Below, piece after piece: positions 36,001 through 59,750 of a stretch of DNA of 63,548 nucleotides. The stretch covers positions 1 through 63,548 of the forward strand of contig NIVC01000654.1 in NCBI GenBank assembly GCA_002269645.1, given 5' to 3'. The translations under genes were made by a program, and so were the position numbers. The notes beneath the pieces were generated by a model. It ran no database searches, was not told the origin of the DNA, and was given only the letters and a program-made list of their open reading frames with translations. Each line of letters starts with the position of its first letter. Positions within the stretch are counted from its first letter, which is position 1. The DNA comes from Macrostomum lignano. Lineage: Eukaryota.

Positions 36001-39000
36001 CCGCCTTCGAATATCTGGAAAGCAGATTAAGCTAGAGACACGATTCTTTCTGGGAAGACAGGGACTGACACGCTCTAATGATCTGTAGAATCTCATATCT
36101 GAGTCTTCTAATACAGCTTGGCAATTGCTGATTGATTTTCGCGAATTTCACCATTTAATGCATTGCAATTTTCTGGAATCGCCTTTTTGAATGAATATCT
36201 GGAAAGCAGATTAAGCTAGAGACACGATTCTTTCTGGGAAGACAGGGACTGACACGCTCTAATGATCTGTAGAATCTCATATCTGAGTCTTCTAATACAG
36301 CTTGGCAATTGCTGATTGATTTTCCGATTTCCCATTTAAATACATTGAAATTTTCCGGAATCTCCGCCTTCGAATATCTGGAAAGCAGATTAAGCTAGAG
36401 ACACGATTCTTTCTGGGAAGACAGGGACTGACACGCTCTAATGATCTGTAGAATCTCATATCTGAGTCTTCTAATACAGCTTGGCAATTGCTGATTGATT
36501 TTCGCGATTTCCCATTTAAATGCATTGCAATTTTCTGGAATCGCCTTCGAATGAATATCTGGAAAGCAGATTAAGCTAGAGACACGATTCTTTCTGGGAA
36601 GACAGGGACTGACACGCTCTAATGATCTGTAGAATCTCATATCTGAGTCTTCTAATACAGCTTGGCAATTGCTGATTGATTTTCCTGATTTCCCATTTAA
36701 ATACATAGAATTTTCTGGAATCTCCGCCTTCGAATATATCTGGAAAGCAGATTAAGCTAGAGACACGATTCTTTCTGGGAAGACAGGGACTGACACGCTC
36801 TAATGATCTGTAGAATCTCATATCTGAGTCTTCTAATACAGCTTGGCAATTGCTGATTGATTTTCCGATTTCCCTTATTTAATACATAGAATTTTCCGGA
36901 ATCGCCTTCGAATATCTGGAAAGCAGATTAAGCTAGAGACACGATTCTTTCTGGGAAGACAGGGACTGACACGCTCTAATGATCTGTAGAATCTCATATC
37001 TGAGTCTTCTAATACAGCTTGGCAATTGCTGATTGATTTTCCGATTTCCCATTTAAATGCATAGAATTTTCTGGAATCTCCGCCTTCGAATGAATCTGGA
37101 AAGCAGATTAAGCTAGAGACACGATTCTTTCTGGGGAAGACAGGGACTGACACGCTCTAATGATCTGTAGAATCTCATATCTGAGTCTTCTAATACAGCT
37201 TGGCAATTGCTGATTGATTTTCGCGATTTCACCATTTAAATGCATTGCAATTTTCTGGAATCGCCTTTTTGAATGAATATCTGGAAAGCAGATTAAGCTA
37301 GAGACACGATTCTTTCTGGGGAAGACAGGGACTGACACGCTCTAATGATCTGTAGAATCTCATATCTGAGTCTTCTAATACAGCTTGGCAATTGCTGATT
37401 GATTTTCGCGATTTCCCATTTAAATGCATTGCAATTTTCTGGAATCGCCTTTTTGAATGAATATCTGGAAAGCAGATTAAGCTAGAGACACGATTCTTTC
37501 TGGGAAGACAGGGACTGACACGCTCTAATGATCTGTAGAATCTCATATCTGAGTCTTCTAATACAGCTTGGCAATTGCTGATTGATTTTCCTGATTTCCC
37601 ATTTAAATGCATTGAAATTTTCCGGAATCGCCTTCGAATATCTGGAAAGCAGATTAAGCTAGAGACACGATTCTTTCTGGGAAGACAGGGACTGACACGC
37701 TCTAATGATCTGTAGAATCTCATATCTGAGTCTTCTAATACAGCTTGGCAATTGCTGATTGATTTTCGCGAATTTCCCATTTAAATGCATTGCAATTTTC
37801 TGGAATCGCCTTCGAATGAATATCTGGAAAGCAGATTAAGCTAGAGACACGATTCTTTCTGGGAAGACAGGGACTGACACGCTCTAATGATCTGTAGAAT
37901 CTCATATCTGAGTCTTCTAATACAGCTTGGCAATTGCTGATTGATTTTCGCGATTTCACCATTTAAATGCATTGCAATTTTCTGGAATCGCCTTGAATAA
38001 TATCTGGAAAGCAGATTAAGCTAGAGACACGATTCTTTCTGGGAAGACAGGGACTGACACGCTCTAATGATCTGTAGAATCTCATATCTGAGTCTTCTAA
38101 TACAGCTTGGCAATTGCTGATTGATTTTCCTGATTTCCCATTTAAATACATAATTTTCCGGAATCTCGCCTTCGAATATCTGGAAAGCAGATTAAGCTAG
38201 AGACACGATTCTTTCTGGGAAGACAGGGACTGACACGCTCTAATGATCTGTAGAATCTCATATCTGAGTCTTCTAATACAGCTTGGCAATTGCTGATTGA
38301 TTTTCGCGATTTCCCATTTAAATGCATTGCAATTTTCTGGAATCGCCTTCGAATGATATCTGGAAAGCAGATTAAGCTAGAGACACGATTCTTTCTGGGA
38401 AGACAGGGACTGACACGCTCTAATGATCTGTAGAATCTCATATCTGAGTCTTCTAATACAGCTTGGCAATTGCTGATTGATTTTCGCGATTTCCCATTTA
38501 AATGCATTGCAATTTTCTGGAATCGCCTTTTTGAATGAATATCTGGAAAGCAGATTAAGCTAGAGACACGATTCTTTCTGGGAAGACAGGGACTGACACG
38601 CTCTAATGATCTGTAGAATCTCATATCTGAGTCTTCTAATACAGCTTGGCAATTGCTGATTGATTTTCCGATTTCCCATTTAAATACATTGAATTTTCCG
38701 GAATCGCCTTCGAATAATCTGGAAAGCAGATTAAGCTAGAGACACGATTCTTTCTGGGAAGACAGGGACTGACACGCTCTAATGATCTGTAGAATCTCAT
38801 ATCTGAGTCTTCTAATACAGCTTGGCAATTGCTGATTGATTTTCGCGAATTTCCCATTTAAATGCATTGCAATTTTCTGGAATCGCCTTTTTGAATGAAT
38901 ATCTGGAAAGCAGATTAAGCTAGAGACACGATTCTTTCTGGGAAGACAGGGACTGACACGCTCTAATGATCTGTAGAATCTCATATCTGAGTCTTCTAAT

Positions 39001-42000
39001 ACAGCTTGGCAATTGCTGATTGATTTTCCGATTTCCCATTTAAATGCATTGAATTTTCGGAATCGCCTTCGAATATCTGGAAAGCAGATTAAGCTAGAGA
39101 CACGATTCTTTCTGGGGAAGACAGGGACTGACACGCTCTAATGATCTGTAGAATCTCATATCTGAGTCTTCTAATACAGCTTGGCAATTGCTGATTGATT
39201 TTCGCGAATTTCCCATTTAAATGCATTGAATTTTCTGGAATCGCCTTCGAATATCTGGAAAGCAGATTAAGCTAGAGACACGATTCTTTCTGGGAAGACA
39301 GGGACTGACACGCTCTAATGATCTGTAGAATCTCATATCTGAGTCTTCTAATACAGCTTGGCAATTGCTGATTGATTTTCGCGGATTTCCCATTTAAATG
39401 CATTGCAATTTTCTGGAATCGCCTTCGAATATCTGGAAAGCAGATTAAGCTAGAGACACGATTCTTTCTGGGAAGACAGGGACTGACACGCTCTAATGAT
39501 CTGTAGAATCTCATATCTGAGTCTTCTAATACAGCTTGGCAATTGCTGATTGATTTTCGCGAATTTCCCATTTAAATGCATTGCAATTTTCTGGAATCGC
39601 CTTGAATATCTGGAAAGCAGATTAAGCTAGAGACACGATTCTTTCTGGGGAAGACAGGGACTGACACGCTCTAATGATCTGTAGAATCTCATATCTGAGT
39701 CTTCTAATACAGCTTGGCAATTGCTGATTGATTTTCGCGATTTCCCATTTAAATACATTGAATTTTCTGGAATCGCCTTTTGAATGAATATCTGGAAAGC
39801 AGATTAAGCTAGAGACACGATTCTTTCTGGGAAGACAGGGACTGACACGCTCTAATGATCTGTAGAATCTCATATCTGAGTCTTCTAATACAGCTTGGCA
39901 ATTGCTGATTGATTTTCGCGATTTCCCATTTAAATGCATTGCAATTTTCTGGAATCGCCTTGAATATCTGGAAAGCAGATTAAGCTAGAGACACGATTCT
40001 TTCTGGGAAGACAGGGACTGACACGCTCTAATGATCTGTAGAATCTCATATCTGAGTCTTCTAATACAGCTTGGCAATTGCTGATTGATTTTCCGATTTC
40101 CCATTTAAATGCATTGAATTTTCTGGAATCGCCTTCGAATGAATATCTGGAAAGCAGATTAAGCTAGAGACACGATTCTTTCTGGGAAGACAGGGACTGA
40201 CACGCTCTAATGATCTGTAGAATCTCATATCTGAGTCTTCTAATACAGCTTGGCAATTGCTGATTGATTTTCGCGATTTCCCATTTAAATGCATTGAAAT
40301 TTTCTGGAATCGCCTTTTTGAATGAATATCTGGAAAGCAGATTAAGCTAGAGACACGATTCTTTCTGGGAAGACAGGGACTGACACGCTCTAATGATCTG
40401 TAGAATCTCATATCTGAGTCTTCTAATACAGCTTGGCAATTGCTGATTGATTTTCCGATTTCCCATTTAAATACATTGAATTTTCCGGAATCTCCGCCTT
40501 CGAATATCTGGAAAGCAGATTAAGCTAGAGACACGATTCTTTCTGGGGAAGACAGGGACTGACACGCTCTAATGATCTGTAGAATCTCATATCTGAGTCT
40601 TCTAATACAGCTTGGCAATTGCTGATTGATTTTCGCGAATTTCACCATTTAAATGCATTGCAATTTTCTGGAATCGCCTTTTTGAATGAATATCTGGAAA
40701 GCAGATTAAGCTAGAGACACGATTCTTTCTGGGAAGACAGGGACTGACACGCTCTAATGATCTGTAGAATCTCATATCTGAGTCTTCTAATACAGCTTGG
40801 CAATTGCTGATTGATTTTCCGGAATTTCACCATTTAAATGCATTGCAATTTTCTGGAATCGCCTTCGAATGATATCTGGAAAGCAGATTAAGCTAGAGAC
40901 ACGATTCTTTCTGGGAAGACAGGGACTGACACGCTCTAATGATCTGTAGAATCTCATATCTGAGTCTTCTAATACAGCTTGGCAATTGCTGATTGATTTT
41001 CCTGGATTTCCCTTATTTAAATACATTGCAATTTTCCGGAATCTCCGCCTTCGAATATCTGGAAAGCAGATTAAGCTAGAGACACGATTCTTTCTGGGGA
41101 AGACAGGGACTGACACGCTCTAATGATCTGTAGAATCTCATATCTGAGTCTTCTAATACAGCTTGGCAATTGCTGATTGATTTTCGCGATTTCCCATTTA
41201 ATACATTGCAATTTTCTGGAATCGCCTTTTGAATGAATATCTGGAAAGCAGATTAAGCTAGAGACACGATTCTTTCTGGGAAGACAGGGACTGACACGCT
41301 CTAATGATCTGTAGAATCTCATATCTGAGTCTTCTAATACAGCTTGGCAATTGCTGATTGATTTTCCTGGATTTCCCTTATTTAAATACATTGAAATTTT
41401 CCGGAATCGCCTTCGAATATCTGGAAAGCAGATTAAGCTAGAGACACGATTCTTTCTGGGAAGACAGGGACTGACACGCTCTAATGATCTGTAGAATCTC
41501 ATATCTGAGTCTTCTAATACAGCTTGGCAATTGCTGATTGATTTTCCGGATTTCACCATTTAAATGCATTGCAATTTTCTGGAATCGCCTTCGAATATCT
41601 GGAAAGCAGATTAAGCTAGAGACACGATTCTTTCTGGGAAGACAGGGACTGACACGCTCTAATGATCTGTAGAATCTCATATCTGAGTCTTCTAATACAA
41701 CTTGGCAATTGCTGATTGATTTTCGCGAATTTCACCATTTAAATGCATTGCAATTTTCTGGAATCGCCTTTTTGAATGAATATCTGGAAAGCAGATTAAG
41801 CTAGAGACACGATTCTTTCTGGGAAGACAGGGACTGACACGCTCTAATGATCTGTAGAATCTCATATCTGAGTCTTCTAATACAGCTTGGCAATTGCTGA
41901 TTGATTTTCCGAATTTCCCATTTAAATGCATTGAATTTTCTGGAATCGCCTTCGAATATCTGGAAAGCAGATTAAGCTAGAGACACGATTCTTTCTGGGA

Positions 42001-45000
42001 AGACAGGGACTGACACGCTCTAATGATCTGTAGAATCTCATATCTGAGTCTTCTAATACAGCTTGGCAATTGCTGATTGATTTTCCTGGATTTCCCATTT
42101 AAATGCATTGAATTTTCTGGAATCGCCTTCGAATAATCTGGAAAGCAGATTAAGCTAGAGACACGATTCTTTCTGGGAAGACAGGGACTGACACGCTCTA
42201 ATGATCTGTAGAATCTCATATCTGAGTCTTCTAATACAGCTTGGCAATTGCTGATTGATTTTCCGGATTTCCCATTTAAATGCATTGAATTTTCTGGAAT
42301 CGCCTTCGAATATCTGGAAAGCAGATTAAGCTAGAGACACGATTCTTTCTGGGAAGACAGGGACTGACACGCTCTAATGATCTGTAGAATCTCATATCTG
42401 AGTCTTCTAATACAGCTTGGCAATTGCTGATTGATTTTCCTGGATTTCCCATTTAAATACATTGAAATTTTCTGGAATCGCCTTCGAATATCTGGAAAGC
42501 AGATTAAGCTAGAGACACGATTCTTTCTGGGAAGACAGGGACTGACACGCTCTAATGATCTGTAGAATCTCATATCTGAGTCTTCTAATACAGCTTGGCA
42601 ATTGCTGATTGATTTTCGCGAATTTCACCATTTGAATGCATTGCAATTTTCTGGAATCGCCATTTTTGAATGAATATCTGGAAAGCAGATTAAGCTAGAG
42701 ACACGATTCTTTCTGGAAAGACAGGGACTGACACGCTCTAATGATCTGTAGAATCTCATATTTGAGTCTTCTAATACAGCTTGGCAATTGCTGATTGATT
42801 TTCCTGGATTTCCCATTATTTAAATTTTCCGGAATCTCCGCCTTCGAATATCTGGAAAGCAGATTAAGCTAGAGACACGATTCTTTCTGGGAAGACAGGG
42901 ACTGACACGCTCTAATGATCTGTAGAATCTCATATCTGAGTCTTCTAATACAGCTTGGCAATTGCTGATTGATTTTCGCGAATTTCACCATTTGAATGCA
43001 TTGCAATTTTCTGGAATCGCCATTTTTGAATGAATATCTGGAAAGCAGATTAAGCTAGAGACACGATTCTTTCTGGAAAGACAGGGACTGACACGCTCTA
43101 ATGATCTGTAGAATCTCATATTTGAGTCTTCTAATACAGCTTGGCAATTGCTGATTGATTTTCCTGGATTTCCCTTATTTAAATACATAGAATTTTCCGG
43201 AATCTCCGCCTTCGAATATCTGGAAAGCAGATTAAGCTAGAGACACGATTCTTTCTGGGAAGACAGGGACTGACACGCTCTAATGATCTGTAGAATCTCA
43301 TATCTGAGTCTTCTAATACAACTTGGCAATTGCTGATTGATTTTCGCGAATTTCACCATTTAAATGCATTGCAATTTTCTGGAATCGCCATTTTTGAATG
43401 AATATCTGGAAAGCAGATTAAGCTAGAGACACGATTCTTTCTGGGAAGACAGGGACTGACACGCTCTAATGATCTGTAGAATCTCATATTGAGTCTTCTA
43501 ATACAGCTTGGCAATTGCTGATTGATTTTCCTGATTTCCCTTATTTAAATACATAGAAATTTTCCGGAATCTCCGCCTTCGAATATCTGGAAAGCAGATT
43601 AAGCTAGAGACACGATTCTTTCTGGGAAGACAGGGACTGACACGCTCTAATGATCTGTAGAATCTCATATCTGAGTCTTCTAATACAGCTTGGCAATTGC
43701 TGATTGATTTTCGCGAATTTCACCATTTGAATGCATTGCAATTTTCTGGAATCGCCATTTTTGAATGAATATCTGGAAAGCAGATTAAGCTAGAGACACG
43801 ATTCTTTCTGGAAAGACAGGGACTGACACGCTCTAATGATCTGTAGAATCTCATATTTGAGTCTTCTAATACAGCTTGGCAATTGCTGATTGATTTTCCT
43901 GATTTCCCTTATTTAAATACATAGAAATTTTCCGGAATCTCCGCCTTCGAATATCTGGAAAGCAGATTAAGCTAGAGACACGATTCTTTCTGGGAAGACA
44001 GGGACTGACACGCTCTAATGATCTGTAGAATCTCATATCTGAGTCTTCTAATACAGCTTGGCAATTGCTGATTGATTTTCCTGGATTTCCCTTATTTAAA
44101 TACATAGAAATTTTCCGGAATCTCCGCCTTCGAATATCTGGAAAGCAGATTAAGCTAGAGACACGATTCTTTCTGGGGAAGACAGGGACTGACACGCTCT
44201 AATGATCTGTAGAATCTCATATCTGAGTCTTCTAATACAGCTTGGCAATTGCTGATTGATTTTCGCGAATTTCACCATTTAAATGCATTGCAATTTTCTG
44301 GAATCGCCTTTTTGAATGAATATCTGGAAAGCAGATTAAGCTAGAGACACGATTCTTTCTGGGGAAGACAGGGACTGACACGCTCTAATGATCTGTAGAA
44401 TCTCATATCTGAGTCTTCTAATACAGCTTGGCAATTGCTGATTGATTTTCCTGGATTTCCCTTATTTAAATACATAGAAATTTTCCGGAATCTCCGCCTT
44501 CGAATATCTGGAAAGCAGATTAAGCTAGAGACACGATTCTTTCTGGGGAAGACAGGGACTGACACGCTCTAATGATCTGTAGAATCTCATATCTGAGTCT
44601 TCTAATACAGCTTGGCAATTGCTGATTGATTTTCGCGAATTTCACCATTTGAATGCATTGCAATTTTCTGGAATCGCCATTTTTGAATGAATATCTGGAA
44701 AGCAGATTAAGCTAGAGACACGATTCTTTCTGGGGAAGACAGGGACTGACACGCTCTAATGATCTGTAGAATCTCATATCTGAGTCTTCTAATACAGCTT
44801 GGCAATTGCTGATTGATTTTCGCGATTTCACCATTTGAATGCATTGCAATTTTCTGGAATCGCCATTTTTGAATGAATATCTGGAAGCAGATTAAGCTAG
44901 AGACACGATTCTTTCTGGGAAGACAGGGACTGACACGCTCTAATGATCTGTAGAATCTCATATCTGAGTCTTCTAATACAGCTTGGCAATTGCTGATTGA

Positions 45001-46303
45001 TTTTCGCGAATTTCACCATTTGAATGCATTGCAATTTTCTGGAATCGCCATTTTTGAATGAATATCTGGAAGGCAGATTAAGCTAGAGACACGATTCTTT
45101 CTGGGAAGACAGGGACTGACACGCTCTAATGATCTGTAGAATCTCATATCTGAGTCTTCTAATACAGCTTGGCAATTGCTGATTGATTTTCGCGATTTCA
45201 CCTTATTTAAATGCATTGAAATTTTCCGGAATCGCCTTCGAATATCTGGAAAGCAGATTAAGCTAGAGACACGATTCTTTCTAGGGAAGACAGGGACTGA
45301 CACGCTCTAATGATCTGTAGAATCTCATATCTGAGTCTTCTAATACAGCTTGGCAATTGCTGATTGATTTTCGCGAATTTCACCATTTAAATGCATAGAA
45401 ATTTTCCGGAATCTCCGCCTTCGAATATCTGGAAAGCAGATTAAGCTAGAGACACGATTCTTTCTAGGGAAGACAGGGACTGACACGCTCTAATGATCTG
45501 TAGAATCTCATATCTGAGTCTTCTAATACAGCTTGGCAATTGCTGATTGATTTTCGCGAATTTCACCATTTGAATGCATTGCAATTTTCTGGAATCGCCA
45601 TTTTTGAATGAATATCTGGAAAGCAGATTAAGCTAGAGACACGATTCTTTCTGGAAAGACAGGGACTGACACGCTCTAATGATCTGTAGAATCTCATATC
45701 TGAGTCTTCTAATACAACTTGGCAATTGCTGATTGATTTTCGCGAATTTCACCATTTAAATGCATTGCAATTTTCTGGAATCGCCATTTTTGAATGAATA
45801 TCTGGAAAGCAGATTAAGCTAGAGACACGATTCTTTCTAGGGAAGACAGGGACTGACACGCTCTAATGATCTGTAGAATCTCATATCTGAGTCTTCTAAT
45901 ACAGCTTGGCAATTGCTGATTGATTTTCGCGATTTCATTTAAATACGAAATTTTCCGGAATCTCCGCCTTCGAATATCTGGAAAGCAGATTAAGCTAGAG
46001 ACACGATTCTTTCTAGGGAAGACAGGGACTGACACGCTCTAATGATCTGTAGAATCTCATATCTGAGTCTTCTAATACAGCTTGGCAATTGCTGATTGAT
46101 TTTCGCGAATTTCACCATTTAAATGCATAGAAATTTTCCGGAATCTCCGCCTTCGAATATCTGGAAAGCAGATTAAGCTAGAGACACGATTCTTTCTAGG
46201 GAAGACAGGGACTGACACGCTCTAATGATCTGTAGAATCTCATATTTGAGTCTAGTAATACAGCTTGGCAATTTCTGATTGTTCTTACTGGATTTCCCAT
46301 TTA
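1..46303. repeat. Satellite-like tandem array, ~180-187-bp monomers, two monomer types (A/B) forming a ~371-bp dimer; continues past the left window edge
   Basis: Constant segment GAATATCTGGAAAGCAGATTAAGCTAGAGACACGATTCTTTCTGG(G)GAAGACAGGGACTGACACGCTCTAATGATCTGTAGAATCTCATATCTGAGTCTTCTAATACAGCTTGGCAATTGCTGATTGATTTTC recurs throughout. It is followed by type A (GCGAATTTCACCATTT(A/G)AATGCATTGCAATTTTCTGGAATCGCC(A)TTTTTGAAT) or type B (CTGGATTTCCCTTATTTAAATACATAGAAATTTTCCGGAATCTCCGCCTTC). Measured examples: B 44318-44501 (184 bp), A 44502-44688 (187 bp), A 2555-2740 (186 bp), hybrid 2741-2919 (179 bp), B 2920-3103 (184 bp). Confidence 0.98.
46217..46303. repeat. Diverged, partial terminal monomer at the right edge of the array
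   Basis: TCATATTTGAGTCTAGTAATACAGCTTGGCAATTTCTGATTGTTCTTACTGGATTTCCCATTTAA carries several substitutions in the otherwise invariant segment; unique AT-rich sequence follows. Confidence 0.9.
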
Positions 46304-47376
46304 AGAATTGATGACGACACTCATAAAGCAGAAATTTAAAAAATCATCAAAGTTTCATTTCGTAGTTACCTACTTTCAGTAGCATTTATTGAAAAATTCT
46401 TGGCTGAAAGATTCTGAAAAAGCTACTTTTTTGCCGAGAATGATTTTGATAACATACGAGCGTATTATTTCTTGAAATGAGGTTATAGACTTGAAAATTG
46501 TTCAACAAATAAAAATGGAGATCCAGGAACATAAAATTACTAATAATAGACCCTAGACTTGTTTTTTTGAACAGACCCTAGACTCTAGACTTGAAAAGCG
46601 TGTTTTTTTACACAGTGCCCCCCACTCTGCGCCCTCTCGATAGTAAGTAGTACAGTGAAAATTGTGAAAAACTCGGCGTCGAAATTTCGATGTTCTGGCG
46701 CCCAGCGCCATCTGTTGGACCGGGCGCCAGTGCACCACTGGGACAGCGGTCCTGACTTTCTAAATCATCAGGCATGTACATTCTCTGAGCTTTGGAGGTT
46801 GATCCCTATGCCGACAAACCCTCGGCAAATTTTAAATCCTAGTCTGTTAACAGAGATACACCTTTTAATTGGTTCGAATCGTCACTGTTAGTCTTTCCAG
46901 CCTCTGTTCAAAAATCGTATCTGTATGAAAGACAGCTGATTTATGAGACATCGAGAAAGGGCCTGTCAACTCAAGCTCACAAAGTGGAGTTTAAAAAATT
47001 CCAATGTACACAAATGATATGTCATTCTGCTCACAATGACACTAGGAAGCTGGGTTTGGCAAAAGAAGCGACGGAAATTGGACTTGGGATAGGGGAGAAC
47101 AAGCAACGGAATAATTGATGAGCTTAAGTTGACAAAATAGTCGCTAACTATCACCTTTCCTGTTCTCCCAAGTCATATTTTTGTTGCTTTTTTTGCCAAA
47201 CCCTGATTTCTGGTGTCACTCTGAGCAAAATAACGCATCATTTTTGTACATAGGTTACTCGGGCTCCACACATTGTGAGATTAAGTTGACAGGCATTTTC
47301 AGATTATTATAGTTGAATATACATGTAATTCTGTAATTTCTAATTTTCTCTCACAGTTATTTGATGCAATGCTTAC

Positions 47377-50300
47377 CATCTGTCAAATTCACACTTTGTA
47401 CTTTATAAGAGTTTGAGAAGCAAATAAATCCGGCCAAATCTAATTGCCTGGCTACCGCCTCAGCATCTGCCAAGAAGTCTATGGCATCAAACTTTGATGC
47501 GAACTCCGTACCAGGAGAGGGTCGAAAAAGACCTGCCGAATCTGGCGATGAACTGGACGAACTGTCCGAACTGGAGTTCTGAAATGGAAATAAACTAATA
47601 CGATTGATATCCTACTGGCTTCGTACCCCAATTAGTATGAGCGTATCTTGAGGAATGAAGTATTCAAGACAGGCAGTTGTCAAGTTTCGTTTGTTACATT
47701 TCTAAAGACAATATTATTTAAACCCAGACTCCGGATGGTATACATGTACGCCGGAATTTCCCGGCGTATATATATAGAGGGACCTAAATTACACATTGGC
47801 GTACAACTTGGCGTACAAAGGGGCCTGGCGTGCCCTCTTGGCGTACAGCTTGGCGTATAGAGATTGCCGAGACCAGCAGGTGGGACCAAAAGTTCCGAGT
47901 CCCAACAATAAATCTACATAACTAGCATAAAAAATGATTAAGTTTGCATTTGGCATAGTTTCTATGTACATAGTTACAGTAGCTAAATTTTGATCAGAAA
48001 GAAAAGCCGGGTCTTTACGAAGTATAAGTATAACAAAAATAGTTAAAATAAACTAGTTCTTTACAGTTAAGTAAAAATGTTTTCAGTTTTAACACATAGG
48101 TTGTTTAAATACTGAAAATTTTGCAAGCTTTTAATATAAGTTGTAATTTGTAATTTTTATTTTGGCGTATTTTTGTACGCAATAAAAAAGTTCGTTGGCG
48201 TACATCGGCGTGCATGAGCTACGGAAGTAATTTTCGTTCCGGCGTACAGCGGTACACGATCCTGACCCTGGATTTAAACCTTGCGAATACTCTGCAAGCT
48301 GGTGGTTTTTGCAGTTCTGCTCCCAAGGTTTCTGAGACAATTGACTGCCACAAATTGACTGCAAATCTAGCCCTAACCCTAAACGTAATTTCTAAGATTT
48401 AACCCAACTTTATCTTTAACTCTGACGTTTATCCAAATCTAAGCTAAAGCCCCTAACCCTACCACGAATCGACGGCAGTCTAATATCACTGACAGTCAAG
48501 TTGCTGGCAGTCAAGTCTAATTTTGGCAGTTTGGCAAACATTTGGCAGTCACGTGAACAGTATCCCATTACCAAGCACAGACATGGACTTAAGTTTTTTG
48601 TGACTGGAAACGTAAAATCGTAAAATCTATTTATACAAACTAATTACTTCATCAAGTTTTTTTTGCCTTTTTACTGCACCCTTCATCTAGAAGTTTATAA
48701 TGAACTCAAAATGTCCGAATATACTAGTGAAGACAAATGCGTTAAGAGAGTCTCACCGAATTGTTATGCGATTCATTAAGCGAAGAGATCGAAAACCTAG
48801 ACATGCCACTCAAGGCATCCGGCAGCAGCCGCAGCACCGGTTCCAAGTAACCAACAAAAAATGTGCTGATCCCACTGTGGCTGTTTACAATGGGTACCCA
48901 TTTTTGGTTGGATCTTTCAAAATCGGATTTCGATTCGCAGGCGGGCAGAATGAAAGACGAGACTAGTGTTTCCAACAGATCGTACAAAACCACTGGTGCG
49001 TCCTGGGACAATAGCTCCGGAGCTACAAGGTTGATAGCGATGAACACCTGTCTCGAATTCAAGTAGGGATCCTGGCAGAACCAAAGTCGAGCGTTGCACG
49101 ACGACGGCAGTTGAAGTTGACGCGGGCCTGCTCCATGAGGCTAGCAGGTGAAGTTAGAAATTTTGGTTTGGCTTAGAATTGATAATAAAAGGTAATCTGG
49201 AGCTTCTTCTAAGGGGTCACTTTTACGTCAAGAGCCAAAGCTTACTGTTATGGGCTAAACCGACTGCTTGCCGGACCAGTTTGAACTAGAAACGCCGGAT
49301 AGAATTAAACAAAAGTTTTTTGAAGCTAATTGGGGTTCATAGAAGTTGTTTAACTGATACATTTTTTGTTTAACAAGCTTGAGTGTGTTTAAAATTCCAT
49401 AGGGGCTTGCTCACAAAAAGTGGCTGACGAGTGGGGCGCGTCTGCGTACAGTATTGACGCGCGCTTGTACGAGCGAATTATGTTCTAAAGGGAGTTGCTG
49501 GTTGTGGGACGATTGTCGCCGAAGGCGTTGTTTTGCTATGGTTCTGAAAGCCCTTGAAAGTTAGTTGGATGATATCTCTCTATGAGATCTCGACTGCAGC
49601 AGATAGATCTGAAGTTTTTTCTTCGAGCTCCATTTCGGTGGTAAACTTGACATCCCCATTCAGGTAGTTAAAGACAGTATAACTTCACAAGCCAAAAATT
49701 TAACTTGACACTTCTTTCGAAAAGTCTTGATGGCTACTTTCGCGCTAACTATGAAATATTCGTATAATTTTTTGTGTTGTCTCCAAAAGTTTTAAGCTTA
49801 TGAAAATTTGAGTTTGTAAACGCTCACCCCGTAGAGACTGTGAGATTGACAGAACCAATAAAACTCAACTGTGTTTCTTAATTCTATTCTAAATCTTCTA
49901 GATTCTCTTAAATGCAAAACAGAATAAATTGGTGTCGACTAACCTCTTCTCGGGGCTTCAGACTGAAGTCGGTGCACACAAACGGATTCGGCTTTGGCAT
50001 TTCAAATTCTTTCTCCAATTCGCAGTCGTTTGCAGGCCAAGGTGCCGAGCAGGCGGCTAGAAGTTCTGGCGAAAATTCCTCTTCACTGTGCGGAGATGCA
50101 TCTTTGGCCTGGCTGGACGGCTCGTCTGAGATAGAAGGGTATACAAGTTACTGAGTTAGCATTACACCTGTGTATGATAGTGTATTATATGACCCTTTAG
50201 TTCGATTCTGCGGAATTACTACATGTATGAAACGCTTAAATTACGATCAATTTATTTTATTTTATCAACTGCAGTTGTTTCTTCTTTGATTTAATGAAGT

Positions 50301-50881
50301 GTTGTCAGTGTTTCAAACTGAAAGTATGTTTGTAGAATGGGCCTCAATGCCAGCTAGCAAGTGCGTGGTTCTTGTAGGATAATGAAAAATTAGACTAGCA
50401 ATATGTGCCTTCCGGTTGGCAAGACAGCAACAAAGAAAAGAGTTATTTTTTTCTAAATAAACTACATGTAGGTTTTTACTACTGCCTGCGCTCGTAATAA
50501 CTTACTCGAAGCTTCGCCTTTGCGATTTAGATCCGACACGAACACTTTACATTTTTCGGGCGACAAACAAGTCAGAAAGTCCTCGATTGCTCGAGGCGAG
50601 TATTCGTTGAGCAGATAGCCAGCGAAAATTAATTTGTGAATGGGGAATCTCAGTAGTCGAGATGCAACGCTTAAATTTTCGTCCAAAACGTTTATAATGT
50701 TAGCACGGCGATAGAGGATATCTTCAAAGTTTTTAGCAAGTTTTGTTCGCCTTTGGTGTCTAATTTCGTCATGCAGCCATTTTTTTGGTCCAATTTTTCG
50801 TATTAGTGCTATTAAGCGAAATACAAACTTGATCGTCTGAAATGAGAAAAAAGTTTAACAAAAATATATCAAGAAATCACG

Positions 50882-50929
<48 letters not shown>

Positions 50930-53048
50930 CATAAAAATCTGAGTACCTCGTCCTCCATCTCGGCAGAACAGTGCTTCTGGCAAAAAGTTGTATTGAACGA
51001 AATTTGATAGGAGTCAAAGCCAGTATAGCCGTAGTCTAAAAGATTGGCAACTGGACAACGGCGAAGAATTTCCGGTAGCTCTCCTCGTTTTCTTGAATAT
51101 GCATCCGAGAGTTTTCCAAATAATGTTTCGAACAGGTAGCTCACGTACAAGTCTGGCGAGGTCTCAAACAGATCAGACTGATCTGGCACAGGGAAGACAA
51201 ATCTAATCTCGTCCAAGTTGACGCCTCTACTTCGAATCTGTTTTTTGCAATGGAGTATAAGGAATGCAATGTAAAAACTCAGGGATTAATTTTACAGTTT
51301 TCCAACTGGAGTAACAGGGTGCTACACTACATTTTCTTAGAAATCTGCTAGAGGTTGGTAAAGTACAACATTGTGGGAGTTTGCGGGTGCGCTGCTGGCC
51401 ACAGATAAACACTCGTGCAGCTGCAGGTGGCTGCGATGGTGAGCTGCGGAAGCTGTGCTGCCGGCGGGAGGCCCCATGGTTTAAGGAACGTATATCTGCC
51501 GTATTGCTAAAGCATTTAGTATGCTCTCAAGGAGCCGGGTTTTTCTCGACCGAAGTAGTCTATGGTAAAACTTCATTTAGCGCTATGAGAGCATACAAAA
51601 TAAACTAGCTATCGATGTGACAAATGACTTCCCTTTTTACCGGCCTACACAGGGGCGTCGCCAACGGGGGGGGACAGGTTGGGACATGTCCCCTCCAGTA
51701 AAAGATCTGGGGGGCATAATTTTTGCTGCATGGCGACAATTAAAGCCGACAATTAAATGAGTGCCTGTGGCGCTGAAATGAGTGCCTGCGGCGCTGAAAT
51801 GAGTGCCTGCGGCGCTGAAATGAGTGCTTGCAGCGCTGAAATGAGTGCCTGTGGCGCTAAATTAGGTGTGCAGTGCTAAAATGAGTGCTGACAACACCGG
51901 ATCTGAAAATATTGTACATTTAGGAATTTCGTCGTGTACATGTACTTGCAGAATTCTTGGCTTTGTCTAAAACACCTACATGCAGGACGATTTGATTCCG
52001 TGTGCGGCCAGCTTAATTCTAGGTTTCTGCACTACCCGACGTCAGTGGCAAACCCGACGAGTTTCTAGTACCGAGCACTGGAATGCTTTCCCATGAAAAA
52101 TAACGCACCTTGACTCCCATTTTCGTTCCATCGAACGGGTGCGTCCCGAACAGAATCCGATTAGCAAATGCGTCTGGAAGCTGGCCAAAAGTAGCCAAAA
52201 CTAGGGCCTGAAATCGTAGCCAATTGTACTCAAAATTGTACTCAATTTTAAACAATGCAATCCAGCATAACTATTATTAGTTCGTCCCTCACCTCCAAGT
52301 CATCGAGCGAACGCGAGTCCTCCACAACCAGCCTCACCAAATTTCCAGAGTAGTAGAGGCTGTGAAACTGCGTCAATTGGTCCAGCAGCTTTTCCTCAGT
52401 CCAGTTGGTAATTAGCCGCTCGTCAGGCAGCCTATTAAACTGATGGTTTGGATTGCCAGCGCAGCGCTGCAGCCTCTCGACAGGCTGTATACAATCGGTA
52501 GGACTATCAGCCATTCCCCTCATCAGCGCTTGTCCGATTTCATACCTACAAAACTCGGGTCTTAGTATGTCGGCCGCCAGCTGCTCTAAAATCATGGGCA
52601 TTTCCGTGAAACCCTCCATGCAAACGCTGTACTCAGTGTGAGCTTCAAAAACGCGCATCTTTTCATTATAAATTGATTTTAATTTTAATGTCTTTCGAGA
52701 GATAGCTAGACGCTGGCAGAGCCGTGCCAGGCCTCTGCAATCGGGCGGGTCCTGCAGGTGGCCCACACCAATGCTGATAGTCAAAACCGAACCGTTATGG
52801 TTAAAAATGCCGCCAAAACTGTTCTGACTGATCAGATGAGCTTGCACTCCGTTACTCAGCTCGACGCTGCGGTCCAGATATGGCAGCAAGCTACCCTGTG
52901 AGTCGGTTCGTCTCACTACGAACGAAGCAACGTTTAAGGAACTCGATTGTCGTTCAGCTAGAAATTTACAGCCGACCACCTCAAAATAAATGATTGAAAG
53001 ATGGTGATTAGCGCTGTATTGCCTTCTAATTGACAAGAAAGCGATCAT
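47377..53048 (-). CDS. Gene Z: IDE-like (peptidase M16A) pseudo-peptidase, N-terminal half plus first part of domain 3; 3' end not found
   Basis: Hand-built exons (minus): 53048-52293, 52207-52109, 51237-50947, 50836-50506, 50125-49944, 49140-48757, 47578-47377. All junctions are GT-AG with consistent phases, giving 748 open codons plus 1 nt. IDE-like blocks: RSVELSNGVQAHLIS, DPPDCRGL, GNPNHQF, QFHSLYYSGNL..SLDDL, THPF, FVFPVPDQ, GPKKWLHDE, LSPEKCKVFV, EFEMPKPNPF, ARLWFCQD, FVGYLEPVL. HXXEH is replaced by RLCQR (52710-52724). The start codon is uncertain. Confidence 0.82.
47744..48250. repeat. Clustered GGCGTA(C/T)A motifs with a GC-rich hairpin
   Basis: Stem TACGCCGG (47747-47754) / CCGGCGTA (47761-47768). 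About five TGGCGTA-like copies lie in 47798-47858 and four more in 48163-48248, around an AT-rich middle, in intron 6 of gene Z. Confidence 0.5.
48335..48568. mobile_element. Small non-autonomous-element-like insert with GGCAGTC inverted motifs and internal CCCTAA tracts
   Basis: TTGACTGCCA (48341-48350) is the reverse complement of TGGCAGTCAA (48505-48514). Further GGCAGTC copies occur near 48474 and 48544, and CCCTAACCCTA(A) at 48371 and 48451. No TSD identified; class unknown. Confidence 0.4.
49450..49750 (-). pseudogene. Possible degenerate copy of the domain-3 exon inside intron 5 of gene Z
   Basis: Minus frame reads MELEEKTSDLSAAVEIS*RDIIQLTFKGF (TAG at 49580-49582), comparable to C exon MELSISRSSNGIQLCFSGY. 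The similarity is short and judged by eye. Confidence 0.35.
50886..50926. repeat. (GA)20 microsatellite
   Basis: Uninterrupted GA run in the short intron 50837-50946 of gene Z. Confidence 0.98.
51755..51890. repeat. Minisatellite, 21-bp unit, about 5 good and 1-2 decayed copies
   Basis: AAATGAGTGCCTG(C/T)GGCGCTG tandem copies in intron 2 of gene Z, about 100 bp after a CAGGGGCGTCGCC motif (51650-51662). Confidence 0.92.
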
Positions 53049-53159
53049 CCATTTAAAAATACACTAGCAATCCAACAAAAGGGAGCCAACAATAATGGAG
53101 TAAAAATTTTTGAATAAACCACATGCAGCTTCTCTTTGCAATAACCTCAGATACTCGCA

Positions 53160-53330
53160 AGGCTTGACATTTCAGCAATTCCCCCCTGCACAAGCCTCAA
53201 CATATCAACTTCCCCCCCGTGAGCCTTGACATCTCAGCGATGCCCCCCATAAGCCTTGAAATCTAAAAAATCCTCTGTCAACCTTGAAATCTCCCTAACC
53301 CCATCCCTAACTCTAACCCTAATCCTAAAG
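53160..53330. repeat. Imperfect ~30-bp tandem repeats ending in a degenerate CCCTAA tract
   Basis: About five (G/A)CCTTGA(C/A)AT(T/C)TC.. units with C-runs, then CCCTAACCCCATCCCTAACTCTAACCCTAATCCTAA (53293-53328); lies between the last exon of A and the start of Z. Confidence 0.65.
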
Positions 53331-53523
53331 CCGTGACATTTAAGTAATTCTCCCCAAGAGTCATTATAGACCCAGATAATGTTAACATCAATTTGAGTTT
53401 GTCCTACCCCCCCCCCGAGCAATTTTCTTTTCCTAGGGCTTGCAAATTCTAAATAGGATTTTCCATATTTACTTTTTTTCTAAAATTCCCGCATTTGATA
53501 ATCGTCCTTCTGTTCAAACTAAC

Positions 53524-56500
53524 CTGGTTCAATAGAAGATTCTTTGTCATTTCAACTAGGCGCATTGGCGACGGTTTTGGGCGTTGAAATCTTGCATCAA
53601 TTTCGCACTCAGTTGATGGCCAATCAGCCGAGCAGACGGCAAGAAGTTGTGGTTGAAATTTCTCCAGTCTGTACTCAGCGCATTCGTCAAGTTCGCGCTT
53701 ACAACTTGTGCAGTCTATGAGAAACGGATTATGGGGCTTAAAATATTGAATTCGCTTTTACATGTAGTGTTTCATGATCTTCTACTGTCCTATTGTGCAG
53801 TCGTTCATTAATGACGTCTACTGTCCTATTGTGCAGTCGTTCATTAATGACGTCTACTGTCCTATTGTGCAGTCGTTCATTAATGACGTCTACTGTCCTA
53901 TTGTGCAGTCGTTCATTAATGACGTCTACTGTCCTATTGTGCAGTCGTTCATTAATGACGACAATATTGTGAATTTACATGAACTTGACCAACGCGGGTG
54001 CATGAGGGGGGCCGTAGCCCAGCGGTCTAGCGCAGGCTCTGGTGTGCCAGCGACCCAGGCTAGATTCCAAGTGCAGTCACATTAATTTGGGGCTGAATTG
54101 GAATTTTGGCTTGGCTCGCTTGTGCAATTAACGGCCTTGAGAGCCAACCCCCCAAGGCGCAGTGAAGTGTACATGCCTAACGATAAAATAAAGTTAGGGC
54201 CGCTGTACACTCCTGTGTGAGTGTGTGCCTGCGTACGTATCCGCGCGCTTGTATGCCTGCTCAGGGGAGTCGACGGAATGGGCAGTAATGCCTCTCGCCG
54301 GTTGTGTGCCTATGTCGCTTAAAGTGCGCCAGGGTGCACACAACCCCCCTGCCGCTAAAAAAATGCGGGTGCATGCAAAATTGTACAATTAAAATTCTCT
54401 TACACTGAGTTCCCTTAGCCCGTCCGTCAAATTTGGTAACAAACCGCTCGGGCACGAACACTTTGCACCGTTCGGGAGTCAGAAGTTCCAATAAGTCTTT
54501 AATCTCCTCCGCCGAGTATTTCGTTAGCTGGCGACGAGCCGTCAGCACGTGTTGCAGCGGATACCGTCGCAGCCTGAAGCACAGCTCGTCGATGTCAGAG
54601 CGCCTCCATTGTTGATTCGCGTTTACATGTAGTTCGCACTCGTTAAGCCAATCTTGCACCTCATCAAAAAGCCACTTTTGCGTCCCAACTGATCGGAGCA
54701 TGGCCAGGTAGCGAAAGACGGCAGTGATGATCTAAAGGTGCACAACGGGAATCAAGATGTCACAATCAGAGCATCCATAATTAAGGAGTAAACTGCTGCA
54801 CCCTATAGACCACAAATGAGCCACAGGGTACGAAGAAATTTATTATCCATAACAGCTTTAAGCCTTTTATTTAAGAAAAAGTTAAATTTCCTTCCTACAT
54901 GTACCATCCAGGACAATTTTAGAAACTTGTGAGCTGCATGCAAAGTAATATTTTCAAAACTCGTGACCGGAAACTTTTGCCCTGACTTGTCACGAACGCT
55001 GGGGATTTCAGTATCGGGATTCGGGATAAGTCGGAACTTGGAATTGCGTCCAGATTTCCTGAAATCAGTATTCTGGCTGGGATCCGTTCGAGACATGCCT
55101 ACTATACTACTATACTAGCCTCCGTTCGCTACTTGATGCTTGATGGTTTCTCGAAAAAAGGTTGGAAATAGCTTTAAGAAGCTCAGTTTTGTCGGCAATC
55201 TTATTTCTTAATCTAAAAGTGAGCTTCCAGCACTTGTTATCGAGAGGTGTTAATTTTGCTCAATACCGATGAGCTCCTATTAAAGAAATTTACTCGTAAC
55301 ATTACCATGTCCTCACAACGCGGATTCAATTTTCTGTTGCAGTGCACAAAAATGTAAAATGTGTCGTAGCCAGTGGCGGGATCAGAATCCGAGGCAGTAA
55401 CGGCCGCGCTATTAGTCTTCAGAAAAGCATTGAGACCGTACGGTTTGTCGCAAGCTAGCAGGAACTGCAGGTACAGGTCCGGCGACGAGGCGAATTTTGT
55501 CGACTGATCCGGCAGCGGAAAGGCAATGTAGATGCCATTAAAAGATGCATTTAGGGCGCGAATCTGCGAGCGGTATACGGGTTACTTTGTTCGTTTTATA
55601 TTGCAGCCACTGGGCCGCGAAAAATTACAAATAGAGGATGAATATTGTGCTATTCAAATAAATTGCTTCCATGGCTTAGAATAGATAACTATTACAAAAA
55701 GGATGAAAATACCTTGACTGCCGTTTCCGTGCCGTCGTAGGGATGACCGACATTCTCATTCACGATTGGTGAAGAAACGGGCAAGTTTTCTTGCATGCTC
55801 GAAAAAGCAACCTCGATGAGGCTCTGAAATCATCGAAAATTTTAAAACATTTTTGTCCTTTTCTTGTTCTAACAGATACAGTGTGTTCTGTATTCTGACT
55901 TCGATTGCATTATTAAAGATAGTTTGATGGCTTTTTGATGTTAACGAGTTAACTAGAGATTTTAGATGCTGAGATGTTAACAAGCTCTACGAAACAGTTG
56001 GACTTACCTGCAGTTCGTCTAGAGGACGGGGATCCGCCACAGCTATGCGAAAGTCGCTAACGCGGTAGTGCTGCGAATGAAACTCAATTAGGCGGGTGCG
56101 CAACTCGGCCGCGCTGAAAGCGGCAACGGTGGCTGATGGATCGCAGACTGCATGCCGATTGCACGGATGCTGCGGGTTGGAGGTGCGGCTCTCCAGCAGG
56201 TGCAGGGGTGACCGGGCGAAGGAGAGTTTGCGGCTTTCCCTGTCGAGCGATAGCCGCATCAGTCGATTAATGTTTGCCTCCGAAAAGTCCGGTCGCTCGA
56301 GGCTATTGGCAAGCAACTTCGTAACATGATGCAGTTGTTGAAAGGACTTATTTATTATACAAAACATGCTCACGTCTGTTTTTGTCCTGAAGGGTTAAGC
56401 ATCGTGAAGTTTAGAGCTAGTATAAGAACAATGTACGCTCGTATTGACGCAAAACTTTTACTGCATGCATACGCTCGTACCCTATTTCATTTTTGTGAGG

Positions 56501-57075
56501 TGCTTTTTGTCTAAAAATGTCTTCACTTCGTGTTAACAGAAATGGGTAAATATGCAGGATAAAATGTTTCTTATTTTCACTATGTGCATCACTTGCAAAA
56601 TCGTGTCCTCAAAGGTTTCTCATGGATTTCTATTGCTACATTGAGGAGTGTTAAACTACAAGTTTGAATTTTACAAGACTCAGTTTGATCAAAGAAGTTA
56701 TTACTGAGACATGATGTCCTCCAAAGGCGAGGCTCTTTCCGATGCTTCCGTAAGTTCCCAGTAATCATGACTGGTTTGCGGTTGTTGATTATCTAATTCC
56801 AAGCTTTGTTGAGCAGCAATAATTTCGTTACAGAGCTGAGACAGGCCGAGACAGTCAGGCGGGTCGTGCCTTTGGCCGGCACCCATGCTGACGCAGAGAA
56901 ATGACTCCATCGTCCAGTTGCGCTCCGAATCTGTCTGGCAATCGTCGACGTTGTGCCGAATCAGCAGCGCCTGAACGCCGTTGTGCAGCTCGATACCGCG
57001 GCATTCCAAGAAGTTGGACCAAAAACTGCGCGGTGACTCGATGTTATCAAAGCGTTGCTTAATCCTCGACGACAT
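53524..57075 (-). CDS. Gene A: IDE-like (peptidase M16A) pseudo-peptidase, N-terminal half (domains 1-2); ends at an unpaired phase-0 donor
   Basis: Exons (minus): 57075-56705, 56386-56008, 55823-55713, 55563-55306, 54731-54404, 53714-53524. Phases 2,0,0,0,1,0 chain without a stop (546 codons). Blocks: MSSRIKQRFDNIESP, CRGIELHNGVQALLI, HDPPDCLGL, NPQHP, LIEFHSQHY..PLDEL, GHPYDG, IAFPLPDQ, GTQKWLFDE, RYPLQHVLTA, LTPERCKVFV, AEYRLEKF..CSADWP..FQRPKP. Intron positions match gene Z. HXXEH is replaced by QLCNE (56824-56838). Confidence 0.82.
53781..53960. repeat. Perfect minisatellite, 5 x 36 bp
   Basis: TCTACTGTCCTATTGTGCAGTCGTTCATTAATGACG repeated five times without mismatch; lies in intron 5 of gene A. 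Confidence 0.97.
54008..54080 (+). mobile_element. tRNA-like head (SINE remnant or tRNA pseudogene) in intron 5 of gene A
   Basis: GGGGCCG-TAGCCCAGCGG (A box, 54015-54025) ... GGCTAGATTCC (degenerate B box, 54058-54068). The acceptor stem does not pair well, so it is not called a functional tRNA. Confidence 0.55.
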
Positions 57076-57822: not shown

Positions 57823-59750
57823 TCAATTAAGTGATCGTATTGGATATGCTTCCAGACTACTTTTTAACGTCTCCAAGTCGGAAATGATTGTGCCCTACAA
57901 ATGATTTTAGAAATCACGATTATGAGTTATTTAAAAGCAAAGTCTAGGAAACAAATTTTGAAACTATGGTATATTCAAATTTAAAATAACAAATTACATG
58001 CGTGAAGGTATAACTAGGTTTGTAAAGATTTTTCAACACTTACGGATGTTCCAGATTCATCAATCGCTAGTTTTGAATAGTTCTGTAGCTCGAAAACAGT
58101 TCGATCTGGCGATCCGAAACAGAACCATTTCTGCGGGGAGAAGATAAAGAAATTGAAAGGCTATGGAAATAAACAATTAAGCAACCCCGGTGATCATCCT
58201 TGACGTGACCTTTTAAGGAGATACAAATGTACCAAGCACAAAACCAGCTAACACAAAGTGCGCCCTGTTTAAGTAGAATATAACTAACAACAGGTGTTCG
58301 TGCATGACTCAGCTCAAGATCCATGACACTAATAAGATTGATAGAAGTCCGATCGGTAATCGACTCAGCGACCTAATCAACCAAAAATATACCTTCCAGT
58401 AGTTCAACAGGTCCTCCTTTCCGATGCTGTCCACAATGGCGCGCAGACAGTCCATCGCTCGCGGGTCATCCCAGGTGAATTCGAAGTTGCTGGACATGAT
58501 ACGAGTCCAGTACATGTACATTGAGTACTGCTGCTCAATGCTTTTAGGGACTGTCAATGCTTGCATTGCTTGAAGAGCTTTCTGCTTGTAGGTCTCTAAA
58601 GACTCCGAAGACATTGCAGTCAAGTGATTTTCGATCTCAGCAATAAAAGACTCGATTTGCTTCTCCATCTGAGAGAAAGTAGCAGGGAAATAATGTAAAA
58701 ATATTATTCGACAATTTTAATCTCAAAAATGAATATCATTGCGCAAAGAGACTGGTTACTTCCAAATGACACGTATAAATTAGTATCGCGCATCAAATAT
58801 CACTCAGTAAGGTTTTCGTTTGTCCAACCTTTGCAGGTGAATTGTCGTGGCTCATTTCAACCAGGAAACAATTGCCACTGTAACCTCGCGATACGGCTCG
58901 GAAGACTTTGCATATTTCCACTCCATTAGAAACTTCCAATATATACTGTAGCAGATAGCTGTGACAGGCTCGGTTGCAGAACTCTTCTCCCAGTTTCTTC
59001 ATAGCATTCGTCATCGCCACGGAGGCTCGTCCATCGCCACAGGAATCTGAATGACGAAGCCGCAAGTAGAGGCAGCATGTCGTTGGCGATGAGCTCTGTG
59101 TGATTCTTGGTCCTGGCACCGCTGGATGGTGCTGTGGCTTCCCTTGCAAAGGTGGCGCTCTGGGCGACGGAATCTAGAAAAATCGGACTCTAATTCTGTT
59201 GCTGTCTCAGCTGACAAAGCTGGAATCACTGACAGAACGGATTGAGCAGACGTGATAGCATCATCATGAGCACCAGAATATCAGCGAATAAAATCCAAGG
59301 TGATGCCTCTTCCGTCTGCGGCTGGGACTCGACTTTAGACGAGTTGAGAAAAACATCTACGATGGACTGCAGATCACTCATAGTAACGCCTGTTGAAAAG
59401 GGGCCAATGCTGAATACTTGAACTGTGCCACAAAATTTGCATCACGACCTAGGTACATCCAAAGTAAGACTCACAGTTGTTTCGCTCACGTTCACTTCAT
59501 CAAACTGATCCCGTAAAATACGTCGTATCCCCTTTAAAGTCAAGAGAGGATTTTGGTCCAAAGCTGTCCACATGCTCCAATGTCACCTTCCATGAATGAT
59601 CATCACCAAATTGCAGTCGTTCTTTTCGGCCCGTAATTTTGTATCTCTTCCAATTGTCGCATCGGTCATTGCCTTGATACTCACCCAATGCGAAATGCTT
59701 CCGTTTTTATCGCCTCTATCGAATAAACAAACTGAGAGGAACGGCCTAAG
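57823..59750 (-). pseudogene. Segment B: orphan, damaged C-terminal half (domains 3-4) of an IDE-like gene
   Basis: Exons (minus): ~59750-59475 (degraded, frameshifted), 59389-58829 (about 13-nt deletion near 59272 removing the FGNA seen in C; 1-nt deletion near 59021), 58668-58393, 58130-58044, 57894-57823 (TGA). The exon equivalent to C 62326-62195 is absent. Only ~660 bp separate it from the stop codon of C, so there is no room for its own N-terminal half. The 5' boundary is approximate. Confidence 0.72.

Follow-up and report, generated by a model that had tools for sequence, protein, structure and literature searches.

The window analysed here is the first 63.5 kb of Macrostomum lignano contig NIVC01000654.1 (assembly Mlig_3_7); the locus record of P0017, one of the annotated proteins discussed below, agrees with it base for base over 38742-63548 at the same coordinates, and the window is therefore the start of that contig. 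Beyond a long satellite array, the remaining 17 kb are filled by coding pieces resembling the peptidase IDE (insulysin), all of them on the minus strand. Our subject is the gene that spans 57075..47377 and continues beyond the window, which holds its 5' 80%. GenBank names this copy Mlig015450g1, and the full-length form of the protein is P0019 (1602 aa, UniProt A0A1I8HM42). Its exons encode two successive repeats of the N-terminal half of IDE, here called A and Z, followed by part of a C-terminal half, and both repeats lack the zinc histidines and the catalytic glutamate that make IDE a peptidase. From its 5' end the gene is composed as follows.

56705..57075, minus strand: exon 1, with the ATG at 57075; first N-half repeat (A), carrying GLSQLCNEII; equals residues 1-124 of P0019 and P0017
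56008..56386, minus strand: exon 2; the intron preceding it (56704..56387) is specific to A
55713..55823, minus strand: exon 3, built by hand from splice sites
55306..55563, minus strand: exon 4; in the sister copy L001, 1 bp is missing from a CCC run here
54404..54731, minus strand: exon 5, ending in phase 1
53524..53714, minus strand: exon 6, the last of the first repeat, without a stop, ending ...LLLNQ at the phase-0 donor CAG/GTTAGT
52980..53048, minus strand: intron 6 sequence, 23 codons from an ATG at 53048, ending in the acceptor tttattttgag; present in no annotated protein
52293..52979, minus strand: exon 7, opening the second N-half repeat (Z) and carrying GLARLCQRLA
52109..52207, minus strand: exon 8, splice-site model
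50947..51237, minus strand: exon 9, splice-site model
50506..50836, minus strand: exon 10, ending in phase 1 like exon 5
49944..50125, minus strand: exon 11, corresponding to the hinge region of IDE
48757..49140, minus strand: exon 12, domain 3 (Peptidase_M16_M); the GenBank model reads through its donor to VRLS and a stop
47377..47578, minus strand: exon 13, the last that the window contains; length 67 codons plus 1 nt, followed by the donor GTAAGC in phase 1; P0023 ends exactly here

Together the 13 exons form a single stop-free minus-strand open reading frame (ORF) of 3814 nt (1271 codons), with every intron bounded by GT-AG. At this base composition, the chance of a frame remaining open is about 2e-14 over 546 codons, 2e-19 over 748 and 2e-32 over 1271. 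A sequence-only reading of this DNA had proposed two paralogous genes, corresponding to A and Z, with intact spliced frames of 546 and 748 codons. Both stop-free stretches were reproduced, A as six hand-built exons (all GT-AG) and Z as six exons totalling 681 codons and a further one of 67 codons at 47578..47377, but the first 23 codons assigned to Z (53048..52980) are intron, and the division into two genes does not hold. A has no stop of its own; the donor of its exon 6 (53523) joins Z in frame at the acceptor tttattttgag/GTGGTC (52980), and annotated proteins span the junction. Thus, A and Z belong to one ORF, as its first and second N-half repeats, and are not separate genes, and the interval to which they had been assigned, 52710-56838, bridges both motifs but falls well short of the gene itself. 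The junction LLLNQ/VVGCK is crossed in P0001, P0017, P0019 and P0023, the annotated reading being ...LLLNQ/VVGCKFLAERQ. P0001 (PAA48429.1) reads ...MTKNLLLNQ/VVGCKSLAERQ..., that is, exons 5-6 of A joined to Z 23 codons past the ATG at 53048. P0017 (PAA79061.1, 1208 aa), which is annotated on NIVC01000654.1 itself at 57075..48742, crosses it as ...LLLNQVVGCKFLAERQ... and matches the window ORF through exon 12; P0023 (a UniProt model of 1271 aa) equals the 13 exons of the window with few residue differences; and P0019 follows the same exon path from the first codon of A and extends into domain 4. The M. lignano gene models in GenBank were built from RNA-seq and transcript assemblies only (StringTie/TACO, de novo transcriptome, TransDecoder), by a pipeline that cut transcription units at trans-splice or poly(A) evidence (Wudarski 2017, PMC5730564). 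Models made from transcripts alone give the A-Z junction RNA support. An interpretation of A and Z as truncated gene fragments, each ending at a bare donor, is ruled out by the junction together with the downstream exons.

The layout of the protein is accordingly an IDE N-half (domains 1-2 plus the hinge; A), a second N-half (Z) and a C-half (domains 3-4), and P0019 shows two Peptidase_M16_C and two Peptidase_M16_M domains in Pfam. A and Z have five intron positions, with their phases, in common, in line with the retained intron positions noted by the sequence-only reading, and A has the one extra intron listed above. The same layout recurs at 31-37% identity in the paralogues P0002 (1650 aa, a GenBank transcript model) and P0003 (1653 aa), each of which has two DPPDCxGLAELC sites and a first unit that stops at the same hinge point.

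The relationship with IDE is evident in both repeats. In phmmer searches against the PDB, human IDE is the top match of Z (E=2e-26, residues 60-578) and of A (E=1e-29, residues 23-488). The peptides GLARLCQRLA (encoded at 52733..52704, minus strand, in Z) and GLSQLCNEII (56847..56818, minus strand, in A) are both aligned to the GLSHFC(E/Q)HML helix of human IDE, which bears out their earlier placement at the HXXEH column of that enzyme. The aligned column reads RLCQR in Z and QLCNE in A, so that HXXEH is present in neither, and neither the zinc histidines (H108, H112) nor the catalytic glutamate (E111) is left in these helices. The possibility that an alternative exon supplies the motif was checked, and no HXXEH occurs in any frame of 46.3-63.5 kb. 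The Pfam Peptidase_M16_C model scores 25.6 bits in Z and 38.5 bits in A (cut-off 23), and Peptidase_M16_M scores 73.1 bits in Z and 28.2 bits in A, the latter just under the cut-off of 29.7; the model of the catalytic N-domain fails to reach its cut-off in Z and has no match in A. Z has a deletion of the segment that holds the third zinc ligand, E189; the corresponding column in A is ambiguous, being R by MAFFT and the E of LDRES by HMMER. The loss extends to the substrate anchor of domain 4: LRTxxQLGY (R824/Y831) is kept in all aligned canonical IDEs, including the M. lignano protein P0035, and is missing in the C-halves of clusters 1, 2 and 3 of the family described below, cluster 1 being judged from the sister-copy protein P0019, as the region lies outside the window. 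By these alignments the M16 fold appears to be retained with its catalytic residues replaced, and the protein would be unable to bind the catalytic zinc or to cleave peptides.

The gene belongs to a family found in M. lignano. An exhaustive HMMER search with the contiguous exon 7, the large exon of Z, against 1.84 billion representative proteins gave sixteen matches. Six of these have E <1e-9 and all six are M. lignano family proteins; no orthologue outside M. lignano was found in the databases searched, the next matches, at E ~1e-4, being conventional IDEs from fungi, fish and bacteria. Word-index homology searches with the first exon of Z and with the M16_M exon of the neighbouring gene C gave no match, and one with P0019 gave only five, from M. 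lignano or generic. Within M. lignano there are at least five clusters at 50% identity, with eight IDE-like units in all, and the clusters adjoin one another in one tandem array.

Cluster 1: Mlig015450 and Mlig021631, the gene studied here
Cluster 2: Mlig000040
Cluster 3: Mlig028065
Cluster 4: P0004
Cluster 5: P0005, gene C of the window

H..EH is absent from all 26 family sequences (P0001-P0006 and P0017-P0034, some of them fragmentary or mis-merged), and the canonical IDE of the same animal (P0035, BOX15_Mlig019571g1) keeps HFCEH at residue 94. When the eight units were aligned with canonical IDEs, both histidines were gone in every unit, the site consensus was GLAELCQRL, and the REVNAVDSEH segment (E182/E189) was deleted in seven of the eight. 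The units are 30-45% identical to one another, with long open frames and shared splice sites kept across that distance, and 18-29% identical to canonical IDEs. In a neighbor-joining tree they are monophyletic with 100% bootstrap support and sister to the M. lignano IDE (94%), the order within the clade being unresolved. Since the eight motif-less units form one clade, one ancestral loss is more parsimonious than two. Thus, the zinc site was probably lost once, before the internal duplication and the expansion of the family, and A and Z would since have drifted from an ancestral GLAELCQRL; of the three catalytic positions, one differs from this consensus in Z and every one does in A. The proposal that the two repeats had lost the motif in different ways gives way to this single loss followed by drift. 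On the other hand, the sequence-only reading was right to suspect an expanded and apparently maintained set of IDE-derived (M16A) proteins without the zinc motif: there are at least five clusters, their gene models derive from transcripts only, and nonsynonymous changes between copies are depleted, as described below. In P0036 (1589 aa), examined as a possible duplicated form of canonical IDE, an unrelated N-terminus precedes P0035 and a second M16 unit is lacking. Database entries for the M. lignano proteins are uncharacterised or named by domain only, and a search of the literature on M. lignano and IDE, or on the gene identifiers, found no paper.

The 3' end of the gene and its surroundings are marked by insertions. 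The further features of the window are these.

47722..48274, minus strand: insertion of ~550 bp in intron 12, absent from L001, with gene-strand AATAAA signals at 48161 and 48135
46305..46743, minus strand: start of an insertion in intron 13 bounded by terminal inverted repeats (TIRs), beginning CCCAGTGGTGCA; L001 homology stops at 46743
1..46304, no strand: satellite with a 183-bp monomer, ~256 copies, 93% matches, reaching the contig start
60417..63418, minus strand: gene C, the neighbouring family member (cluster 5, P0005), with the site GLAELCAELT; the window does not reach its 5' end
58393..59322, minus strand: B, a degenerate, incomplete copy of the 3' portion of gene C, with homologous pieces in three different frames

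The window lacks the four exons (14-17) that encode residues 1272-1602 of P0019, the stretch comprising domain 4. Its collinearity with the sister copy L001 (NIVC01004151.1), at 97.8% identity, extends to window position 46743, which equals L001 17862; homology breaks there, 160 bp before exon 14 of L001. A third contig, L003 (NIVC01002566.1, position 9842), resumes homology at L001 17863, exactly the next base, and carries intact exons 14-17, annotated from transcripts as a separate partial gene, P0018. The foreign DNA starts with CCCAGTGGTGCA in the window and ends with TGCTCCACTGGG in L003, inverted repeats that agree at 11 of 12 positions; no obvious target-site duplication was found at the insertion ends. 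The satellite, of uniform GC content (39%), begins 440 bp past the breakpoint. It seems, then, that one gene copy is split over two contigs by a transposon-plus-satellite insertion; we infer that the TIR-bounded insertion contains, or precedes, the satellite and that the assembly broke there. On L003 there is also a weak 90-bp match to the satellite monomer (1337-1424, 82%). The intron-12 insertion has flanks that resemble a TTAA-type target duplication, in the manner of a miniature inverted-repeat transposable element, although the empty-site comparison is unsettled. With its two AATAAA signals, it may be the reason why the GenBank coding sequence (CDS) ends by read-through after exon 12.

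Comparison of the near-identical copies provides a measure of selection. Over exons 7-13, the window and L001 differ by 9 synonymous and 13 nonsynonymous changes (dS 0.018, dN 0.008), the introns across these exons being ~1.8% diverged, about equal to dS; over exons 14-17, L001 and L003 differ by 6 synonymous and 4 nonsynonymous changes. Combined, the 15 synonymous and 17 nonsynonymous substitutions give an omega of ~0.33, which departs from neutrality (binomial P=0.002) and from the value near 1 expected of young pseudogenes. The near-identical copies are thus, as far as these counts go, under moderate purifying selection. The 5' part of the gene behaves differently: length differences aside, window 53524-57075 and L001 8235-11712 agree at 100% across exons 1-6 and introns 1-5, and divergence over the next 10 kb amounts to 1-3%. 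Recent gene conversion or recombination between the copies, or else a collapse in the assembly, may account for this.

Proteins of the M16 fold without peptidase activity have precedents, from which the present family can be distinguished. Its closest relative is IDE itself (MEROPS M16A; human 2G47, M. lignano P0035), the best match in the PDB at E 1e-26 to 1e-29, with which it shares Peptidase_M16_C and Peptidase_M16_M, the hinge and flanking motifs (DPP..GL...C, LWF.QD). It differs from IDE in lacking HXXEH, in the loss of R824/Y831 from domain 4 of the sister copy and of the E189 segment from Z, and in the extra N-half fused in front, which brings its proteins to ~1600 aa as against ~1000. 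MPP alpha and the core proteins of the cytochrome bc1 complex are non-catalytic M16B subunits whose fold is maintained by selection. They resemble the flatworm proteins in having an M16 fold without catalytic residues, but they are half-size, pair with partners, and are ancient and universal in eukaryotes, whereas the M. lignano family is derived from M16A, is found in M. lignano only among the databases searched, and has no known partner. Nor do its members look like M16B subunits by size or affinity: they are 900-1650 aa long, group with IDE in the tree, and have their best PDB matches in IDE and pitrilysin, not in MPP. A second parallel is the INS family of Cryptosporidium parvum, another lineage-specific M16 expansion with many members lacking the active site (10 of the 22 have HXXEH; PMC8092296). 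That expansion arose independently in apicomplexans, mixes active and inactive members, many of them secreted and linked to invasion, and is not reported to have the N-half/N-half/C-half architecture. Finally, the E111Q form of IDE, described as a "dead-end chaperone," offers a functional analogy: according to one report, catalytically inactive IDE inhibits amyloid formation, a cage without catalysis thus binding peptides and altering their aggregation (PMC3623905). It is, however, an engineered point mutant that still binds zinc.

Expression figures were retrieved for the paralogue Mlig000040 only; Mlig015450 and Mlig021631 of cluster 1 did not turn up in the portions of supplementary tables that were searched. 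In Tables S6 and S8 of Brand 2020 (PMC7336406), Mlig000040.g2, g3 and g9, each of 4953 nt and thus of the length of the P0002 CDS, are classed as "Testes" and flagged germline_FACS, and the counts given there for Mlig000040.g2 are 6 reads in the head fragment as against 724, 876 and 592 in the others. Because inactive IDE still captures peptides and one paralogue is testis specific, our best guess, by analogy, is that the protein would serve the male germline as a non-catalytic cage or scaffold for binding peptides or proteins. Two of its three halves would close on each other, leaving the third free for a partner. A bolder version, which we regard as a long shot, would see in the N-half/N-half/C-half arrangement an innovation that combines a dead cage with a spare N-half able to pair with the C-half of the canonical IDE or of another family member; such a protein might serve as a stoichiometric regulator or peptide sequestrator in the male germline, with sexual selection speeding its evolution.

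Taken together, these observations lead us to assign a probability of about three in four to the reading that the gene is an IDE-derived, internally duplicated member of a tandem family of pseudo-peptidases, which lost its active site once in the distant past, appears selectively maintained, and may encode a non-catalytic binding cage or scaffold. Several points weigh against it. An AlphaFold2 model of the domain-1 exon of Z, made from an eight-sequence alignment, is of low confidence (mean pLDDT 51.8). The dN/dS estimate rests on 32 substitutions, to which exons 1-6 contribute no information as they are identical between the copies, and with no orthologue outside M. lignano the long-term constraint is deduced from paralogues alone. 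In L001, the segment equivalent to exon 4 (9747-10003) has a 1-bp deletion in a CCC run that shifts the frame, which is why the protein P0001 of that copy starts at MIITAVF; this may be a real lesion, or a homopolymer error of long reads or of the assembly. The GenBank CDS of 1208 aa and the two intronic insertions may mean that the window copy yields a truncated product or is decaying. Moreover, the proposed function is drawn entirely from analogy, and the reads of near-identical copies are indistinguishable.

The decay of the window copy can also be framed as an alternative in its own right, namely, that this copy is a decaying or already non-functional duplicate, separated by the satellite insertion from the four exons at its 3' end and terminated early by the insertion in intron 12, while the sister copy is functional. 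The absence of exons 14-17 from the window, the TIR-bounded insertion in intron 13 together with its 46 kb or more of satellite, the 550-bp AATAAA-bearing insertion in intron 12, the CDS that stops at VRLS after exon 12, and the frame changes in the nearby gene C (in its domains 3-4) and in fragment B all speak for such a course. Nevertheless, we consider it unlikely: none of the 13 exons is damaged and their splice sites are canonical, the 3' exons exist, intact and transcript-annotated (P0018), next to the matching insertion end on NIVC01002566.1, and the differences between copies lean synonymous.

Considerably less probable is the original notion of separate tandem paralogous genes for truncated pseudo-peptidases, which would make the fused models artefacts of read-through or of polycistronic transcripts. 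M. lignano does make polycistronic, trans-spliced precursor transcripts, read-through of the exon-6 donor meets a stop after 24 codons, and an in-frame ATG is present at 53048. However, the stop-free frame of A runs into a consensus phase-0 donor that meets a phase-0 acceptor with a pyrimidine tract; a pipeline that cuts at trans-splice and poly(A) signals left the A-Z junction uncut; a continuous two-unit ORF is kept in paralogues at ~35% identity; and no annotated protein contains the 23 codons after the ATG. As for the idea that these proteins are still peptidases, working through a non-canonical metal or catalytic site formed by the conserved His, Asp, Cys and Glu of GRLHDPPDCxGLAELC, the block G(R)LHDPPDCxGLAELCxRL is indeed the best conserved of the family and offers possible ligands that IDE lacks at that place, yet we find this scarcely credible given that A and Z have diverged at several of its positions (GQRHDPPDCLGLSQLC and GHLQDPPDCRGLARLC), that H108, E111 and H112 are lost, along with the E189 segment in Z (ambiguous in A) and the domain-4 Arg/Tyr in the sister copy, and that no M16 enzyme (clan ME) is known to function in the absence of HXXEH.

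The introns of the gene and its neighborhood have further peculiarities. Intron 5 contains a perfect tandem repeat (53781-53960, 36 bp x 5), and in the sister copy L001 this intron is 73 bp shorter, which is about two 36-bp units. The repeat adjoins a tRNA-like stretch (~54000-54300) with the look of a short interspersed element, which ARAGORN and Rfam do not recognize; its core, CCGCTGTACACTCCTGTGTGAG, recurs at the insertion site of intron 13. Across 46-63.5 kb, ARAGORN and Rfam found no tRNA genes and no Rfam families. Intron 6 has 30-bp repeats followed by a telomere-like, CCCTAA-rich patch (53159-53330), intron 8 a repeat of 21 bp x 6.5 (51755-51888), and intron 9 a (GA)20 microsatellite (50886-50926). 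In the region of gene C and B, the GenBank annotation comprises only a 244-aa fragment, and upstream of the window (record position >66834) lies a further M16_M gene on the opposite strand.

Two lessons of a practical kind emerge from this locus. Internal tandem repeats in intron-rich genes can mimic separate paralogues, and an intron filled with satellite can divide one gene between contigs. More generally, pseudo-enzymes derived from the M16 fold were already known, but an animal-lineage family derived from IDE itself is not described in the literature searched. Its distinctive features are the tandem expansion, the conserved architecture of one and a half IDEs (three halves), and the presence of at least one testis-specific member. 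The family thus offers a natural experiment on the IDE cage without catalysis, in an organism amenable to transgenesis and RNA interference.

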